The notes under the pieces: generated by a model | The model's input: the letters and a program-made list of their open reading frames with translations, nothing else | What the model was told of the DNA's origin: nothing | Databases searched by the model: none | Part shown: piece by piece, positions 7,815-37,100 of the stretch | Numbering within the stretch: position 1 is the stretch's first letter | Layout of the letters: each line of letters starts with the position of its first letter | Position numbers and translations under genes: made by a program | Source: Kudoa neothunni | Taxonomy: Eukaryota; Animalia; Cnidaria | NCBI GenBank assembly: GCA_964304625.1 | Contig: OZ199838.1 | Coordinates: 3,080,147-3,144,146 of the forward strand | Reading direction: 5' to 3' | DNA: 64,000 nt

Positions 7815-10800
7815 TTATTTGAACGAGATACTAACGATGGTTACATCTTGAAGGGGTTTGTCAGTGTCACGACTAGTTTTAACTTGAGAAATGGATTTGG
7901 CAGTGGATGCGCCTTGTGTCACTTTTCCAAAAATCGTGTGTTTGTTATCTAACCAACCCTATAAATAATTTTTGACTAATTTTAATTTCTCAAACACATA
8001 AAATTTTAATCCAACAATAAATTTATTACAGCAGGAGCGACTGTGATAAAAAACTGAGATCCATTTGTGTTGGGTCCCGAATTAGCCATACTAACCATAT
8101 AAGGAGAAGAATGTCGTAATGAGGAGTGGAATTCGTCTTCAAATTCGCCGCCCCAAATCGACTCCCCACCAGTTCCATTTCCTAATGTTATTTTCAAATC
8201 AGTTATGTTAATCTTTTCAACTTGTAGCATAAGACAGGTAAAATGGTTGGCCCATGTACATTAAAACAAAAAGGATAACTCACCCAGAGGATCACCAGTT
8301 TGAATCATAAATCCAGCAATAACTCTGTGAAATATGTGACCGTTGTAGTAGCCATTCTTACCATGGGTAACAAAGTTTTCAACCGTACGCGGACATCTAG
8401 AATAATCTTGTGAGTATTTAGTTGTTGAATTGATAAATACTCGGTGGCGTATAATTGGATTTGGATGTCGCCCATTGAAGTGTGTAATATGGCATTCTCC
8501 GGCATTGAATGATTGGCTTGTTTCTAAATTTTTGTCCAAAATATAGTCAACGAATTTTAGTTATCACTATAACCTCGGAGATCGATTCAATCTCGTCTTT
8601 TGTGGGTTTTTCGTTGAAAACGTCACGATTCGTTTCATCGCTAATCACGCCATTTTAATTTAATAAAATCGCGCCAACTTGATACACATCCCCTTAATTG
8701 TTATTAACGAATAAATTAAATCCACCAATAAGAACTACAAACATTTACGTATAATAATAAAAGAGATTAAATTTTCAAATCAGGGTGACTATTGCCATGC
8801 ATATATTTAATTCTATGTGCGAAGTTTTTATTATAATTCAACTTTTTCGATCTCCAAAATAATGCTAATTTAATATAAAGATTTGGTGTTAATAGATAGA
8901 TTATAAAAATCAGACCTCCAAACCATTAGATATTTTATAGTACGCATTCGTACTACAAAATAAAAGATTAAATTCCTTCTAAACAAAAATAACTGCAACG
9001 AATTTTAAGAAATACCTAAAGTTAATATTAAAATTTAATTTAAATAATTATCACCAAATTTCCCAAAAATTTATTTTTAGAAAAATAAATAACATTATAT
9101 CGAATGTTTATTATGAAAATTAAATTTTAATATTAACTTTAGGTATGTCTTAAATCTGCTTTATTTAAATTTAATTTCCAAAGTTGAGATGTAATTTCAC
9201 TGCAGGTATTTTTATAAGAAGAAACATCCATAAATGTGTTAAAATTGAACATTAATCGAATTGGAATATATCGGAATGAATAAAAAATAGCGCCACTTTA
9301 TATACAAATATTAATTTTACTTCATTCAATCAAAATTTCGTTAATTGATGGTAAAATATAAGTAATTTTAAAATTCTTTCAGTCATAATAATTAAGGGGG
9401 TATATATCACTATGGTTCACAGTGGTAATAAAGTTACCTTTCGGCGTTTGATGTAGGGTCTCGGCTTGAAAACAGATAAAATCTATTTTTGTTGAAACCT
9501 GTGCAGGCGATGGTGGGGTCTAATGAAATTTGTCTGAGAATGGGGTTTTCCGCAGATTCGACTTCCTTGATAAATTGTTTAATTACCGCCAAGATTATAC
9601 TTAAATTGAAAAAGTGATTGTGAAATAATATACTTTATTAAAAAGTAATTAAAATAACATAATTTTAATTCGACGATAATATATGAATAACTTTCATATA
9701 GAAAATTAAATAAAATTTTAAACGGCATGATCATTAAGTGAATTACTCATTTAATGTCAAATAGATTAGAAAAAATTCGTAAGAAAAAAATAAATTCATG
9801 AATAATGACCTCAAATTTATTATTAAAAAATTTTGTTGGGTACACAAACTAGCCCAAATGAACATAAATATTTCCTAATAGGAAATAGGAGACTCTATGA
9901 GCAAACGCAGCCGTACGCAAGCAATAAAAGCACTGTATTATGTATTTTGAAATAAATTACCAAATTTGTAGCTCTGCGTTTACGGTTTGGAATTCCCTGG
10001 TACAAAGATAACGAAAGGAATCGCACATGCTCATTTTTCCCAAGGATGCGACAACATTTCCCCGTTTTTAAATTTACAACTACAATTTTGAAGCGAAATT
10101 AAGGCATAGACTTTAAAATAACTACTTTTTATTCCAAACATTGTAGAATATATCAAATATTTGGAAGATTCATCAAAAACTACAAAAAATAAATAACAGC
10201 TACTTAATAAATATTACTTGAATCAACATAATGAAGCGCATCAGTCTTTTGAATTTCGTTTTCTATGGACAACTTTTTACCAAATTCAATATCATTCATT
10301 TTTATTGTATTCTACAATAATGGTAGAATACAACAAGAATCACTGGTTGATTTTTATTATATTATGATAGAATTTCTATCCATAACTATGTAATACCGAT
10401 TGTTGTTCAAGTGATGACTCCTTGGATTCGTCAAATACTCTGTAGATTTTACCAGACAAACAATGAAACACGCGTATCTAGACAGAGAAATAAATTTCGA
10501 AGTCGAAAAGAAGAGAAGAGAAAAAAGAGACCTTTTTATCGGCACTAACGCAAGAGAATAATCGACCGTTTTTCGACAAATTCATTGAGACAATACTTGA
10601 AGATTTCTACAACCAAAATTAGTGCCATTAATCTAATAAAATGAATTCATTTCACTCCAATAAATTCATAGAGGTCGGTATCGGTTTTAAATTCAAATTC
10701 CACATTGTCCGAAGGAAACTCAAAGGTGACAGCATCCCAATATTCGATAATGTCACTTTGATCGACAGAAAGCACAAAATCATACACAGCATTGTACTAA

Positions 10801-12953: not shown

Positions 12954-14099
12954 TAGCATTAATACCGAGCTTTACTCAGAGTTATAATAACAGTTTACAG
13001 AGGTTCAATGTTGTAGTTTTTGGGCGACAAAATTTTATTAGAATAAAGAAATTTTGAAACTCAAAAAATTGCAATAGTAACATAGAAGTATAAGGGATTT
13101 TGTATAAAAAAGTTGTTTCTAAAAAATTAGTTTAGGCTTCCTTTTAAGTAATTTGAGTGTAAGATATGAAAAATCATTTGATTATGAAATATGATGGAGA
13201 ATACGTAGATTGTAGTATAGGAATGAAATATAAATTGGATTTTGCGTAATAGGTTAAACGAATGTGAAGGAGAGAGAGGAGGAGTTGGATGAATAAAGAA
13301 GAGGTTTGCAAATTATGAAGAATTCAGTATAAATAACTTTAAACAGACAAATTAAAATTAAAAATCAACACTCAAAGAAACCCGTAAGAAGAATGAATAC
13401 ACGTAAAAGTAGCCATGATAAATCAATGGGTCAGACGCACCAGAAAAAGGTGAGAGCAAAGGAAAGTAGAGAGAAGAAAACTATGATACGCCAACTGTAT
13501 CGAACATCCACAAAAACAGGGCCGAAAAAACACCAACAAGTTGAAGGAAACACATTACGTTATTGAAGTATCAGTTACATCAAAATGAGAAAAAAAATGA
13601 AACGTCTGGTAGAATAAAATGTGCCATGTCTAGAATTCCTCTAAAAAGAATGTTATAAAAATAACGCGAGCAGTAAAAATACTCATAACTTCGAATGTTC
13701 ATAAACATGGGAAGAGTTAAGGTTGGTTGAATTTTCATGTAAAATTTTTCGGCTGTACGAATCTTAATTAGAAAAACAAATAAGATGAAAAGATACCAGT
13801 ATGTATTCTGAACATGTATAATGGTTGTTTATTCCCTAAAATCCAGGACCTATCATTTTATAATTTCTATGGAGTGAGAGTTTCAACAACTCTTGTTGTG
13901 GAATTTCTCGTTAATTGACATTACAAAATATTGGTATATTTTTTAGATCAATTTCCTCATTTGAATCTATTTATTCGGATATATAATTGTCAATTCGTCT
14001 GTTCTTTTTATCCATAATAAAACGAAAAACAATCGACGCATTATCTCTACTGTAGCCAAAAAATGTAGAAATATTTTAAAAAATTCGATGCTTTTCGAC

Positions 14100-15384: not shown

Positions 15385-18300
15385 ATGAAAATAGCTGGAT
15401 TTCTCCACCTTGTTTTATGTATATTCATGAGTTAATTTTAATGCTAATGTAAGTTTAGGTGTTTCAATATTAAGCATAGTCATTGCTAATGGAAATACAA
15501 GTCCTCAAGCTGCAGCTGCAGCTCCAACGAAAACGCTGAAATACCAGATTGTGAAAGGTTCAGGTAATACCCCAGACCAAATTAAAATCAACCTTGAAGG
15601 CTCTGAATATGGGAATGGCCAAAAGTGTCATATAATGCGATCTAACGAGGCAGAAATTGCAGCTAGTTCAGGAACAATAGCTGCGTTTGCAGAAATCGAT
15701 ACTTGCGCTGCTAATGTTAACGAGGATGGTGCTGATGTTAATGGTAAATGTGTCGTCAACTGCGACACTATTTCGAATACTATTAATTACAAACAGCTGT
15801 CACCGAGAACCAAATACATATACGTTTACGTTGGCACTAATATAGCTACTGTTAGAGTGGCAGTTCAAGGAGCAGCGTCAAAAGTGTTCGGATATTCTAT
15901 ACGTAAATAAGTTTAATTTAACATTAAAATAAATTGAACATAGCATTATTGGCTAATCCACAAATTAGCGTGTCTACGCCTACATCCGGTGACAACAAAG
16001 ATAAACTGAAATTGGGAGCAATAACATGTGTACGTGTAGCGTGTCCAATTTATTACAAGGATATCAAATATGTAGAAGGTACCAAGGGAGAAGATTGTAA
16101 TGCTGAAAATACAAATAATGTAGTTGATTTTGATTTATTGTTACCGCATTATGAGGTGAGATGCGAAAATTATCCCAGTTTCTTTTACAATATGCCCAAT
16201 CAATATATGAAGAAAAGCATAGACATTTATAAGCCTCAGTTTTATATTGTTACAAAAAATGAAGACAAAGTGGGAATTAAATTCGCTAATTCACCATCAT
16301 CTGAAATATGCCTATTCAGTCTTAAAAATGGTCAGGGTGCAACAACCGACGAATCGTATACGTCTGTTTGTGGTGTGGTACTGGTAAAAGGTGTTATGCT
16401 CCTTGTAAGTATGTCGAACTCAATGGCATTACGGGTGGAAAAATTTACGATATTTTGATCCAAACCAGACATCACGACATAAAAGCTAGGGGTAGTAGTT
16501 TGGATGGTTACAAACAAACCAAACTGGGTAACCCTTATATTAACGCGCATTTCTTATTGTTTTCAATAGCCATTCCTGAATCTGAAGAAGGTTTGCTTTC
16601 GGCTTATACCAATGTTGGTGTGACGTTTAATGGTCCACAATTCAAAAAAGCCTCTGCATCAATGACTGCGTGTACTCTTAAACCCTACTTGGCAGACAAA
16701 ATCAAAACAACAAATCCATCAGAGGCAACCTGCAGCGGAGAGAGCATTGGTACTGATGGTAAATGCAAAACTGATTGTTCCATGAAATTGGTGATCAATG
16801 GACTTGCAGCAGGAAAAGCTTACATGATTGAAATTACACCTGGGGGCATTACTGATCCAAATGGTGTCAAAGAATATATATTCATAAGAACAGGTAAATC
16901 AATGTATTTGTTTTATAAAATAACGAATTATATAGCAAAGGGAACCGACAAAAATTATGGAACTACCGCACCAACAAAGACAGACACGACAGTCTCTCTT
17001 ACAGCTATACCTACTACTACAACTGCAGCTGATCAAAAGAAAAATGATCCTACCTGTGAGTATTTGGTGAGTCCGGCTGGATTGGACAGCTTTTACCCCG
17101 CAAAATGCAACGGCAACACCCCTTGTAGAGGAATTTGCAGTGAACAAATTACGATAGAAGACCTTGAGCCGAACAAACCTTATGACATCAGGGTGATCGC
17201 ACATAAGGACTACGATATAAAAGATTACAAAGATATACGAACAAGTTATTGAAGTTATAATTTACCCTTTGAATTTTTAATAGCATTAACAACATTAACG
17301 ATAACACACAAGATCACGTTGGATGGTTTGTCATTGAGGGCCCGATTAAATTCTGTGGATCCAAGTGCGATATGCAGTTATATCGTACAAAAGAAGAATG
17401 GTAACGATTACACAGACTATTACACATGTCCAGAGGTGCCGAAAGTAACAACACCTGTTTCCACCCAAGTAGCACCAGCACCAGCACCCGCCCCGGCTGT
17501 TCCTTCCATGTTAAGTTCTGCAGATCTCAACATAGCTAGAATTGCCATACCGACGGCAGCAGATGATGGTCCAATGTCAGAAGCGAACTCTTCAGTCGCA
17601 GATACTTCAGATACACAGCTTGTTGATGCCGCTAACAGCGCAAACACATGCTCATCAAATCCCCTTTGCAGTTCCATAGCATTTCCCGAGTATGAAGCAG
17701 CAAATACATACAAAATTTTAGTCACAGCTATCGGAAAATCTTTACCAAAAGAGCTTATCATAGAATCAAGTACTATAATGAATGCTTCAATGAATGACAC
17801 TATTAAGAATTCCTTAAACTAAACTTATATTAGGTACACCAAAAGTAAACCCAACTGACTCCTCAAAATTGATATCAGTCGTCATCACGCGTGATGGGAA
17901 CAGTTTTATTGTAACCACCACACTTCCAGCCGGTATGAACGATAAATCAAGATGCAAATGGGAGTTACGTAACAGTAGCGTCAAGTCTAATGCGGTAGTA
18001 AAATCTTGCATGGGAAGAAGCGTCGACGGATGTAGTGCTTTCAAGACCTGTAAAGAATTCAAAATAAATGATTTGCCTGATGGAAATAACTATTATTTGA
18101 CTGTTTACAGTTCTAGAGATGATACGATTTTTGGCGGTGCTGACATACAACAAGGTATATTATTTGTTCACAATGTAATTTAATGTTATATATCGTAGGA
18201 GCAAAGAGTAGTTCAGGGTGAGCTTAGTAATATTTTTTTATTTAATTTAATATTTTTTAGCGGAAAAACCAAACTTATGTATACATTTTTAAATGTTGAT

Positions 18301-25211: not shown

Positions 25212-25751
25212 ATGATATCGAGATTGGTGATCATTTCTTTGGCATTATATTGTATGAATTCTAGTTGCCTGGAGCTTGAGCCTTGTCCTCAAGGTAATGC
25301 ATATGGACAATATTCACCTGTTACTGATTTTTTTAGTAAAATATGCCTCGGTTGTGGGAAATGCTACTATAGATGATTGTAACAAGGAACCTTGTCCTGC
25401 ACCCATAGGCAACACTATTACAGGGCGCTTAAATTTCACTCCCATTGAAAATCTTGACATTGTAAAACTCTGGTTATATGCGGATGTTTTTGGAATAAAC
25501 GTCACAGTGTCAGAAGGGGTGAATATGTGTGATAATAGTTACGGTGTAAAGTGTCCATTAGAGGCACACAAGAATGCTTCATTAGACTATCAAATCGAAG
25601 TGCCATTCTACGCATGGCCATACGTTAGTTACATCTATGTTTGGAGGGAGTTTTGATGATATTCTAGATTAATGTGGATGTTATCTTGATGGTAAAGGAT
25701 GACAACTTTAACATTTTCGGATGCTGGAAATGCAGCATGATTACTGAATGA
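25212..25751 (+). CDS. NPC2: NPC2 / MD-2-related lipid-recognition (ML) domain protein
   Basis: Signal peptide followed by the ML-domain Cys pattern (EPCP..DDCNKEPCP..NFTP..MCD..GVKCPL..GCW). Three exons. Confidence 0.85.
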
Positions 25752-28951: not shown

Positions 28952-29136
28952 CTCAAGTCCACCTGTTCCCACTTGAACTAATTTGTATATTTTATTCGAT
29001 AGATTGACTATACAAATACAAGAAATGACTTATTTTCTAATTATTTATGAAAGCAATCAAGCCTAAATCTTGAATTTAGCTAGGGGTGGGGGTGTTTAGG
29101 CATGCGCAAATTTAAATTAAATTTAAGGATATTTTA
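28952..29136. promoter_or_regulatory. Putative bidirectional promoter with GC/GT-box and NRF1-type motif
   Basis: 185 bp between divergent ATGs. GGGGTGGGGG at about 29083-29092 and GGCATGCGCA at 29099-29108. Confidence 0.65.
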
Positions 29137-30545
29137 ATGAGGGGTATAGCGAGGGTCCTTACCCGATCATCACTGTGGAAACGGAACCTTAATTATCTAG
29201 CGTATCCGAAACAAGTCTTGGTATTTGGATTCAAGCTGATACAGAATTTAGATGGTTGAATATTGTTTAGACCACCACATTAAAATATTTTAATGATCCC
29301 AAACACACATGGTTAACTGAGTATGGGATGGTGTTGAGTGATTTACGAAGGCTGCAGTTGATTTTATTAGAAGTTGATCGATTTAAAAATCTTCAGCAGA
29401 TAATGGATCGTAATATCTTGAATGAAATACAACTAAAAACGCTGCTGGATTATGTCCATAATGATTACATAAATGGTAGGACTAGTGATCTCACTAAACT
29501 TTCAGCTACCCCTGCTATTAAGGTTTTACATTAGTTGATTTTAATTTTATTTGAATTAATGTAGGATATATATTCATGTGTTGGAATCGATTTATCGCCA
29601 ACTGAAATCGCTTTTTGTTCAATTGATTCCTATTTCAATGTGACCAACCTGAAGTACATACCGTTGGATATAACCTTCTCAAATATGGATCATGTTACTA
29701 GAGTGGTACGTGGTTTATTTTTTGATTGCAATTTAGAATGTGTGGTGACAATTTAGATTTGTGATGTGGTGGACAACTCATTACCACAGGCAGATCTTTA
29801 CGTTATAGAACAACAACCAACCTCACTTAACCACGTCACGAAAGATACTGGTTTTCTGAATTTCTATATTATGGAGAAATTGCTGCATACAGCGATTGCT
29901 ACTCGAAAATCACAACAACAACTAAAAACACCTAAAATAATAACCATGTCCGAAAATGAAATGTGTCTACATAGTGGACTGCCCAATATGCAAACTCAAA
30001 GAGAATACATTTGCAAGGTGGTCACCGATGACACCTTCTACTATGCGGAAGTTATCAGATCGGTCAATTTAATGAAACTCAATGAGAGACGTCATGTGGA
30101 TTTGGAATCGATGTACGATGCGAGAAATATCTCCAGTCAGTATCTAGTGGATGTAAGTTGTTTTAATGGTTTTTGTTAATTTGTCGTTTAGAATGTTATA
30201 TCGGCCTCGTTTTTACCTGTATGATAATATTGTTATTTTCATTGTTGTTTTTTTGTTTTGAAATATTGTGGCAGGTTAATTAATCTCAACTTTGATTAGG
30301 TATATTTTGAGATCCTATTAAAAGATAATGCCACTCTAACAGAATTCCACTCGTTTGTTAACACTTTCAATATTCCCGACCACTTAAAATTATACTACAA
30401 TAGCCTGCCAATCAAGCACGATGTCGCTGATGCGTTGTGGTTGGCAGCTTCCTATTGGTTTTATATGAACAAGAATCATGCTTCATTTTTCCAAAATCTA
30501 CCTCCTCCCAGCTCGATCACCATGATTTCTAATACCACCGACTAA
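29137..30545 (+). CDS. TEFM/Ydc2(Cce1)-like (HhH)2 + RuvC-fold mitochondrial protein, paralogue A, with intact resolvase active-site residues
   Basis: Arg-rich, acid-free N-terminus MRGIARVLTRSSLWKRNL. HhH-like region LKYFND...RFKNLQQIMDRNIL. RuvC-fold motifs CVGIDLS, PQADLYVIEQQ and IKHDVADALWLAASYW. Six exons with GT-AG introns. Confidence 0.78.
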
Positions 30546-34634: not shown

Positions 34635-37100
34635 TCACCGCATGTAGACCGATGAACGTTTTCGATGAGATAATACATCGGTATTTTCCAAATCTTGAGA
34701 TTTTGGATTTCCTAATTTGTTTAATCGGTTATTAATACATTTCACGGTTTGGACGTTTAAGCCATAAATGGGTTGCAACGTCGAATCCAAATTATTCGTT
34801 TCGCCAGGTTGACCGGATTTTGTGTGGATTTTGGAGTGTTTCACGAGGTTACTGGGGTCTCTAAACGTTTTTTGGCATATGTGGCACAAAAGTGGCTTGT
34901 TGCTGTTGTGTGTTCGAAGATGGATTTTCAGACCGTACTTCCGTGTGTACAAGTTCTCACATATATGGCAAATAAATTGTTTCCCGTTTCTAGACCACAA
35001 ATGAGGTAGATTCATTATGATGATATCAGGAAGTGCGCCATTTTCCCCATCCAACATAAACAACTTTACTAAACATTAAAGTTATAACCGAATTCGACAC
35101 CATCGTATCCAATTACTGTCATTGTATTTCTCCGAATACATTAAACAATCGACAATCGTTGGCAAACCGTTAGGACATCCCATATGGCCAGATGAGGAAT
35201 TGCTTCTTGACGATTTATAGCTGCCTGTAAAATGGTCGAATGTAAAATTCCATTAGACAATCAAGAATGAGTTCAATGTTGTTACTGTATTCGTGATAGG
35301 AGTTGATATTGAATTGCACATACAAAGGTCCCAACACAGTTTTATTGCTGGTGTTCGAGTCCATCGAAGAGTCGATACTATTTCTAAATGTTAAAACAAC
35401 CCCATTGTGGCTGTTCTCTCGTAGAAAGGATTTAACAAAGTTAAACTTTTTGATAAATTTGTCATAGACATGAATAAAATTTTTCAAATGAGCAAAAGGG
35501 GAAAATGTGCTATTTGTATTATTCTGTGTCATTGATGGTATTGAATTGGAGCCATCTAAAATATCAACCATTACATATCCGCTAATGAATTCCGATAGTT
35601 GTTTTGGTAATAACAGAGATTCGAACCTGGATTGTGAGAACCAGAAGCTGCAGCGTTGTTAGCCAATATTATGTCTAAATTGGGGGAAATTCAGAACTAA
35701 AATAACCATTAATTTACATTCGTTTGAATATATATTCAGAAGCCACTGCCTGATAACTTTAGTCAATTCTTTCTTTTCCAGCCCAAGGTCAATCAATTTA
35801 CCAACATTAATAGCTGTTATGGATTTTCCATGGAATGTACAGTTGGAGATATAGTCGATAAGTTCGGCTTTAGTTTGAATTTCTAGCAGGGATTTGTTGC
35901 GTTCAATTTTGATGTTGTATTTGAAGAGTTCGGCGAGATTTTGAACAAAAACCCCTGAAACCAAATCAGGTGTGTAATAGATAGATGGAAGAGCTATGGG
36001 AATTCGCGACAAATCACTAAGGTTGATATTTGAAATTATGGTGTCGCTCTGAAGGAAGAAATCTATTAAATTGTTTAACGTGTTCGTGTGCTGGCGACCA
36101 TCGTCATTAATGAACAATTTTTTCAAGTGGCTCAAAAAATCGTCATACGTCGCGTATATTTTATTGTTCATTTGATCAGAAACATCAGTATAGCTAAGGG
36201 TTTCATGGGTGACAACGGATGGCAGGAATTCACCAGTATTGTAATCATTCACAAAAAACCCATTAGTGCTAGTAGTTGTAGTAGCATTAGAGGAGGCATT
36301 ATATGAGGAGCATGGATCAGAGCATAGGGACTCAACGTAGACAGACTGTGGATTTATATTACTAAAATTGTTCCGATGTTTTAACGACGTTGTAGGATCG
36401 CTGAACTTTCTAATTGGAATTTGGGCATCATATGCTGGTGAAAATTCTGTGTGCGGGGGAGGCAAGGTATTACAAGGTGCTTGAACGAACATATTGACCA
36501 CTTCTCCGAATTTATTAAGGCCATTTTCAGGATCCCATACATTGTTAGAAAGGAGACACGGCAGATTTGTGTTAAAAGTGTTTTTTGTTTCGATTGAATA
36601 ATTATTGGCGTTATTTGGACAAGGAAAATTTGGATTATTTCCAGCTAAATCCACGGATTGATTATTCGGTCCAGTTATCTCACGTTTGTAGGTAGAATAG
36701 TGCTGTTGGAGCATAGTGAGATGGGGATCAACGTTATTTTTATAGCCAGTAGATTGCATGTGGCTATTGGAAAAGTTATTAAGTGGCCTAGACTGATCAG
36801 CTAGGCAAAAATTGGTCGGCTGATCGGTTGTCTTATTTTTGGCGCAATCATTACTCAAATTATATGACAGTAAATTTTGCTGAAACCCAAAAATAGGATT
36901 ACTAAGAATATTGGTTACGTAAGGACTTTCCCAAGCCTCAGAAAAACTAAATTCATAAAGGGAAAAACTCAGGATTTGTACCCCACATTAGTAATACTTA
37001 TTTTCAGTGGTATTCCTCACATTTTGAATGTTATTTGGTGGAAGAACATTCAAGTAGGAGTTAGAAGAATTTTGTTCGACGAATTGTTTTGGGGCATTAC
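34635..37100 (-). CDS. PRDM13: PRDM13-like C2H2 zinc-finger protein (5' end and exon joins uncertain)
   Basis: Zinc fingers CHICENLYTRKYGLKIHLRTH and CHICQKTFRDPSNLVKHSKIH match the PRDM13 signature (YSRKYGLKIH...FGDPSNLNKH). Partial PR/SET-like pieces TVLGP and DSNWIRW. Long upstream ORF at 35659-36858. Confidence 0.7.

Follow-up and report, generated by a model that had tools for sequence, protein, structure and literature searches.

A candidate TEFM-lineage protein with a complete RuvC-type acidic tetrad in the myxozoan Kudoa neothunni

In the nuclear genome of the myxozoan Kudoa neothunni (GenBank assembly GCA_964304625.1), a 64,000-nucleotide stretch of contig OZ199838.1 (positions 3,080,147 to 3,144,146, forward strand; hereafter, the window) contains a gene of five exons on the + strand, at window positions 29137-30545, that encodes a putative protein of 372 amino acids (aa). 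This protein very probably has a RuvC-type fold and is probably an orthologue of TEFM, which appears to be the nearest member of its clan by direct sequence comparison. The reading that we favour, albeit tentatively, is that of a TEFM-lineage protein that may have stayed competent as a nuclease, with its metal-binding tetrad of acidic residues intact. Human TEFM has been described as a non-functional resolvase or pseudonuclease, whereas the Kudoa protein has Asp, Glu, Asp, and Asp at all four of the motif positions. TEFM is a standard example of an enzyme fold that was turned into a non-catalytic factor, and the time and manner of the loss of its nuclease function are not known.

Acidic tetrad and sequence relatives

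The four acidic residues of the predicted protein are D121 (CVGID), E177 (LYVIEQQ), and D332 and D335 (KHDVADAL). The blocks in which they lie, GID, VIEQ, and DVADALWLA, correspond to GID (D7), AIEQ (E66), and DAADALAIA (D138 and D141) in the K-12 record of Escherichia coli RuvC. Written as patterns, the GID, (A/V)IEQ, and D-x-A-D-A-L-x-(I/L)-A blocks of the two proteins are nearly identical, and the Asp-to-Glu spacing is 56 residues here versus 59 in E. coli RuvC. When an enterobacterial RuvC hidden Markov model (HMM) was run with filters off, exon 5 was set on QADAADALAIAITH, Asp on Asp (D332/D335 on the D138/D141 columns), at ~0 bits. The homologue sets for RuvC, and for the helix-hairpin-helix (HhH) protein YbaV considered below, comprise close enterobacterial relatives only, and the local HMMs are barely above single sequences. 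No significant overall similarity to E. coli RuvC was found: pairwise alignment of the exons gave no gain over shuffles, and the best local alignment of exon 4, which falls on QPDYFAIEQ, scored no better than shuffled sequences. The Kudoa protein also differs from E. coli RuvC in the absence of the Phe of EQVF, in a long insertion ahead of the final helix, and in an N-terminal extension of ~110 aa.

The D-E-D-D pattern, which the initial annotation had called RuvC-like, thus lines up with E. coli RuvC by motif, a correspondence at the level of motifs and not of three-dimensional structure, and the codon coordinates assigned to the four residues proved exact in every case (Table 1). When the peptides of the three exons are shuffled, all three motifs appear together at a frequency of ~1.6e-5, a rate obtained with patterns picked after the fact. 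Because such a rate is not overwhelming across a whole proteome, the motifs alone are suggestive and rely on independent family matches for weight. Nevertheless, the putative catalytic blocks are precisely the residues kept identical to bacterial RuvC in a protein that appears to have diverged beyond the reach of HMMER, which points to selection on those motifs.

All family searches with the protein were run exon by exon, which lowered their sensitivity. In a phmmer search of exon 4 against the PDB, the top four matches were all human TEFM (E values of 0.021-0.029, 18 bits), and no other resolvase, including those of fungi, appeared up to E 10. The alignment pairs residues 7-75 of exon 4 with residues 221-286 of TEFM and spans the strand-helix-strand segment bearing the Glu, with PQADLYVIEQ set on PKADFYVLEK and FLNFYIMEKLL on LLHFHIMEAML. 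This match, although weak, is specific, and human TEFM is the sole detectable sequence relative, in agreement with the kinship to TEFM that had been proposed. The two proteins resemble one another further in size (360 aa in human TEFM, PDB 5OLA, 5OL8, 8U8U, and 9MNA, versus 372 aa), and both combine an N-terminal targeting peptide, predicted in the case of the Kudoa protein, with a C-terminal RuvC-type domain. The stretch that separates the catalytic helix from the fifth strand is presumably longer in the Kudoa protein than in human TEFM.

In the Atlas protein-language-model feature search, the top match of exon 4 was a mostly chordate cluster of the PF09159 (Ydc2-catalyt) family, with a score of 0.92 and 202/256 features; the recognition value of this exon was 2473, over the mark of 2300. 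Ranks 2-3 were occupied by Pox_A22 clusters from Nucleocytoviricota, some of them with PF04848 (scores of 0.90-0.91). Exon 5 matched Pox_A22-type clusters at 0.91 with 183 shared features, but its recognition was low (1745), so that this match counts for less. The taxonomic labels of Atlas clusters derive from few members and are explicitly not to be read as evidence of gene transfer. In addition, residues 35-65 of exon 5 weakly matched a profile of the IS110 transposases (E 0.028), a family whose catalytic domain is of the RuvC-like DEDD type. Exon 3 alone gave no statistically supported match. Taken across methods and exons, the signals converge and point to the RuvC/Ydc2/A22/TEFM clan as the likely home of the predicted protein.

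Counter-evidence and alternative readings

Several observations weigh against a TEFM-lineage protein that is still nuclease-competent, and the first group concerns the loop that follows the Glu. In RuvC, Ydc2, Cce1, and MOC1, the loop starting at the catalytic Glu follows the consensus E(X)2-4[Y/F](X)1-2[D/K/R/N/Q/S], the aromatic member of which inserts into the junction (PMC7078210). A search of the Kudoa protein for this consensus pattern gave no match at E177: the sequence that follows is QQPTSLNHVTKDTG (EQQPTSLNHV), no aromatic occurs until 15 residues further on, and the aromatic wedge is absent (EQQPTSLNHVTKDTGF). The loop of E. coli RuvC reads EQVFMAK, whereas that of human TEFM, EKTGLSIQNSSLF (EKTGLSIQNS), likewise lacks an aromatic residue, and in both human TEFM and the Kudoa protein the Glu is located at the end of the fourth strand. 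With no aromatic in range after E177, similarly to human TEFM, the Kudoa protein as read from its sequence sides with TEFM on this feature, and the wedge-less loop counts against a classical resolvase.

Human TEFM shows no junction-resolving activity (PMC3105396), yet it too retains the Glu (YVLE in the exon 4 alignment). Acidic residues can therefore persist without catalysis, and the difference from the pseudonuclease is smaller than four residues versus none. The contrast with human TEFM drawn in the initial annotation stands in so far as the tetrad is complete in the Kudoa protein, but it is narrower than had been claimed.

These observations bear directly on the possibility that the gene encodes an ordinary TEFM, i.e. 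a non-catalytic DNA clamp or processivity factor whose acidic residues were retained for a structural role, for DNA binding through metal ions, or fortuitously, in which case many invertebrate TEFMs may look alike. This alternative deserves appreciable, if limited, credence: human TEFM is the best sequence match, the loop is TEFM-like, the Glu of human TEFM has outlasted any resolvase function, and the genome encodes a phage-type RNA polymerase as a partner. It is less easily reconciled with the undetected HhH domain and, in particular, with four carboxylates in RuvC-identical contexts (GID, IEQ, and DxADAL) in so divergent a protein, a pattern that would be difficult to account for unless the site were under selection. 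A mitochondrial resolvase fold in a non-nuclease job is found in yeast Mrs1, a paralogue of Cce1 that has become a splicing cofactor for group I introns (PMC2813881). Mrs1, however, acts on RNA, whereas the Kudoa protein gives no pointer to RNA binding and has kept the tetrad. With a full tetrad, a wedge-less loop, and TEFM as its apparent nearest relative, the Kudoa protein is not a clean fit to either known group. If nuclease competence has indeed been retained, a TEFM-lineage protein with this combination of features would provide a direct experimental handle on the transition from nuclease to factor. Should the tetrad prove to be common to most invertebrate TEFMs, the Kudoa gene would be ordinary, but the general point on TEFM would still be worth stating.

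A second group of observations concerns domain detection. In TEFM, a tandem HhH domain lies between the presequence and a linker (PMC11001877). Human TEFM has this domain, whereas no HhH domain was detected in exon 2 of the Kudoa gene by profile, PDB, BLASTP, or AlphaFold approaches. Exon 2 gave no match in Pfam, PHROGs, NCBIfam, or a phmmer search of the PDB, where TEFM is represented both at full length and by its N-terminal domain. BLASTP yielded no alignment of this exon with E. coli YbaV, and the unfiltered HMM of the YbaV family (ComEA-type HhH proteins) likewise failed to match it. Its single-sequence AlphaFold model is one long helix with a predicted local distance difference test (pLDDT) value of 79. 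Because the HhH domain of TEFM is itself degenerate, the failure to detect one in exon 2 does not exclude its presence. Of the TEFM layout proposed in the initial annotation, the presequence-like N-terminus and, through indirect family signals, the RuvC-type domain were supported, whereas the HhH-like domain was not recovered.

The family signals are all weak, and no family reached the cut-off on any single exon in Pfam, PHROGs, or NCBIfam. PF02075 and PF09159 gave no match on any exon up to E 10, in an exon-wise test of reduced power, and the six-frame translation of the genome contained no match to PF09159, PF02075, or PF04848; a control search with PF09159 was silent in every control genome. 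An exhaustive HMMER search with exon 4 against 1.84 billion representative proteins yielded no relative, and its only match, P0001, was rejected as a spurious repeat protein. A word-indexed protein search with exon 4, the length filter of which also drops full-length TEFMs, returned nothing, and a scan of metagenome contigs revealed no relative of the gene. Given that HMMER detected no relative among 1.84 billion proteins, the predicted protein is to be regarded as extremely diverged.

A mitochondrial Holliday-junction resolvase of the Cce1/Ydc2 type, non-orthologous to TEFM and retained as a fungal-type enzyme solely for recombination or segregation of mitochondrial DNA (mtDNA), with no role in transcription, would also account for the complete D-E-D-D motifs, the PF09159 identity of the best exon 4 cluster, the undetected HhH domain, and the large inverted and palindromic repeats of the mtDNA described below. 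Ydc2 of Schizosaccharomyces pombe and Cce1 of Saccharomyces cerevisiae (PF09159) are, like the Kudoa protein, nuclear-encoded and mitochondrial (by prediction in Kudoa), with a RuvC-type domain and a full tetrad. We nevertheless consider this explanation improbable. PF09159 is silent on both the exons and the genome, the PDB search returned TEFM and no fungal resolvase, and the E(X)2-4[Y/F] loop of Ydc2 and Cce1 is absent from the Kudoa protein. Moreover, the best Atlas cluster is mostly chordate, and TEFM is the only known member of the family in chordates. The N-terminal regions also differ, and Ydc2 is described as containing a SAP motif (PMC3105396).

A poxvirus A22-like resolvase gene that was captured from a giant virus of the Nucleocytoviricota and then became domesticated in the nucleus of its host would fit the Atlas matches of exon 5 and those at ranks 2-3 of exon 4, all of which are Nucleocytoviricota clusters and some of which carry PF04848. 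The poxvirus A22 and giant-virus resolvases (PF04848), to which exons 4 and 5 showed Atlas scores of 0.90-0.91, share with the Kudoa protein the RuvC-type clan and the D-E-D-D site. However, the Kudoa gene has the properties of a host gene: it is interrupted by four spliceosomal introns, resembles the host in composition, and lies among host genes, and its product has an N-terminal extension of ~110 aa with a presequence. The best direct sequence match is TEFM, PF04848 has no match on the exons or in the genome, similarity of language-model features is the sole signal, and the taxa of the Atlas clusters, drawn from few members, give no indication of gene transfer. We therefore regard this origin as scarcely credible.

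The remaining points against the favoured reading concern structure and expression. The clustering of D121, E177, D332, and D335 into one site is putative: the single-exon AlphaFold model of exon 4 had a pLDDT of 38, too low to be usable, and a three-chain complex prediction of exons 3, 4, and 5, with a score of 0.32 (mark, 0.34; controls, 0.00-0.11), was used as evidence neither way. Splicing has no backing from RNA, as three metatranscriptome runs with the same species label (X10-X12) gave 0 reads on the gene. These runs showed no sign of the parasite, and their zero counts are thus no test of splicing. The runs sharing the species label (X5-X13) are very large whole-genome sequencing (WGS), restriction-site-associated DNA sequencing (RAD-seq), and metatranscriptome libraries. 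Given the 0 gene reads in X10-X12, the label probably denotes the host fish, and the assembly is likely to be that of a cobiont recovered from host data. Such host-like runs, the tiny introns, and the extreme divergence are all in keeping with Kudoa neothunni.

The zero RNA counts and the lack of relatives in large protein and contig collections would be in keeping with a non-functional locus, i.e. either a pseudogene in decay or open frames that line up by chance. This is very unlikely in our view, since the gene consists of five in-phase exons with canonical splice sites and a contrast in composition between exons and introns (Table 1), exon 4 exceeded the Atlas recognition mark, the family matches of two separate exons agree, and the RNA runs contain no sign of the organism in the first place.

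Gene structure and N-terminal region

The exons, introns, and other features are listed in Table 1. All four introns start with GT, end with AG, and are in phase 0, and each contains an in-frame stop codon, which makes read-through impossible. The guanine-plus-cytosine (GC) contents are 35-46% in the exons, 17-31% in the introns, and 22-31% in the flanks, and an in-frame stop is located upstream at 29113, 24 nucleotides (nt) before the ATG. The spliced multi-exon product of the initial annotation agrees with this structure. Contigs of an independent-format DNA run (X1) from the same sample matched the window DNA with 0 differences.

Exon 1 encodes six Lys/Arg and no Asp/Glu among its 28 aa, with a hydrophobic moment of 0.51. 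This looks like the composition of a mitochondrial presequence, an assignment based on composition, and is consistent with the presequence-like N-terminus that had been noted.

Table 1. Features of the gene, its neighbourhood, and the mitochondrial contig, and genomic matches to PF00940 (positions without a contig name refer to the window)
Feature	Position	Strand	Description
Exon 1	29137-29220	+	28 aa; start codon; basic, acid-free N-terminus resembling a mitochondrial presequence; GC 46%
Intron 1	29221-29270	+	50 nt; GTATTT..GTTTAG; phase 0
Exon 2	29271-29522	+	84 aa; N-terminal region, located where TEFM has its HhH domain and linker; fold unproven
Intron 2	29523-29564	+	42 nt; GT..AG; phase 0; GC 17%
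Exon 3	29565-29705	+	47 aa; first strands of the putative RuvC-type domain with CVGID (Asp codon 29589-29591, D121)
Intron 3	29706-29756	+	51 nt; GTACGT..ATTTAG; phase 0; terminal in-frame TAG
Exon 4	29757-30152	+	132 aa; LYVIEQQ strand (Glu codon 29808-29810, E177), helix FLNFYIMEKLL, strand KIITMSE, long insert
Intron 4	30153-30299	+	147 nt; GTAAGT..GATTAG; phase 0; in-frame stops
Exon 5	30300-30545	+	81 aa and stop; C-terminal helix KHDVADALWLAASYW (Asp codons 30420-30422 and 30429-30431, D332/D335)
Open frame	16368-17249	+	294 aa; weak fibronectin-III match
Open frame	25276-25653	+	ML domain
Exon	34638-35063	-	C2H2 zinc finger
Open frame	35662-36858	-	399 aa; no Pfam match
PF00940 matches	C2:9124637-9125881, C1:5208446-5209497, C1:7051805-7060484, C2:5061077-5062308		Genome profile search
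COX1	C4:2716-3945		8 in-frame TGA codons
Inverted repeat	C4:10012-16158		Imperfect, ~6 kb; arms 10012-10675 and 15500-16158, 84-90% identity
Self-complementary blocks	C4:12885-13044 and C4:13146-13842		Within the inverted repeat; 13146-13842, palindromic centre

Proposed role and genomic context

Contig C4 (18,219 bp) is the mitochondrial genome, and it contains COX1 together with a large imperfect inverted repeat that has a palindromic centre (Table 1). The inverted-repeat mtDNA is a plausible candidate for a branched-DNA substrate: palindromic mtDNA can extrude cruciforms and recombine, from which we infer that it would present a task for a mitochondrial structure-specific nuclease. The phage-type single-subunit RNA polymerase (PF00940) was found at four separate places in the genome (best E 2e-39; Table 1). 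Animals normally have one POLRMT gene, and the four loci could be paralogues or plasmid- or virus-derived copies.

Under the favoured reading of a nuclease-competent TEFM-lineage protein, the Kudoa gene would be the only nuclear representative of the RuvC/Ydc2/TEFM lineage in a fast-evolving myxozoan. The 372-aa product would be imported into mitochondria via its basic N-terminus, would dimerize through the C-terminal RNase-H-type domain, and would be seated on mtDNA, by analogy with TEFM and RuvC. Since all four carboxylates are kept in canonical RuvC contexts, they may bind Mg2+ or Mn2+ as a two-metal site and cut DNA. The protein would then represent TEFM in an ancestral state, still a structure-specific nuclease and possibly also a clamp for the mitochondrial RNA polymerase. 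Because the aromatic wedge loop is absent, the protein probably selects its substrates differently from RuvC and Ydc2, which cleave Holliday junctions in a sequence-specific manner.

A more specific version of this proposal is that the protein is a working nuclease orthologue of TEFM, intermediate between a fungal-type mitochondrial resolvase and the vertebrate pseudonuclease clamp. In the mitochondria, this orthologue would cut cruciforms or recombination junctions that arise in the non-coding half of the 18.2-kb mtDNA, where the ~6-kb inverted-repeat and palindromic sequence lies, and it might at the same time travel with one of several RNA polymerases of the mitochondrial type. We advance this version with considerable doubt and regard it as rather unlikely in its full form. 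Myxozoan mitochondria are odd, and here the oddities include the large palindromic non-coding half of the mtDNA and the several nuclear genes for phage-type RNA polymerases; a nuclease-competent TEFM, if real, could help to maintain such mtDNA. It would also be relevant to the question of whether a dedicated enzyme for resolving junctions exists in any animal mitochondrion.

The gene is present as a single copy in the 40.26-Mb, four-contig assembly. Upstream of it in the window, an open frame encodes an ML domain (MD-2-related lipid-recognition, NPC2-like; PF02221, E 8e-8), and a 294-aa open frame farther upstream showed a weak fibronectin-III match under the cut-off (E 3e-4). Downstream, on the opposite strand, an exon for a C2H2 zinc finger (PF00096, E 8e-10) adjoins a 399-aa open frame. 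Neighbouring frames with ML, C2H2, and fibronectin-III (FN3) domains indicate an animal nuclear region, and together with the spliceosomal introns they bear out the animal-like genome suggested at the outset.

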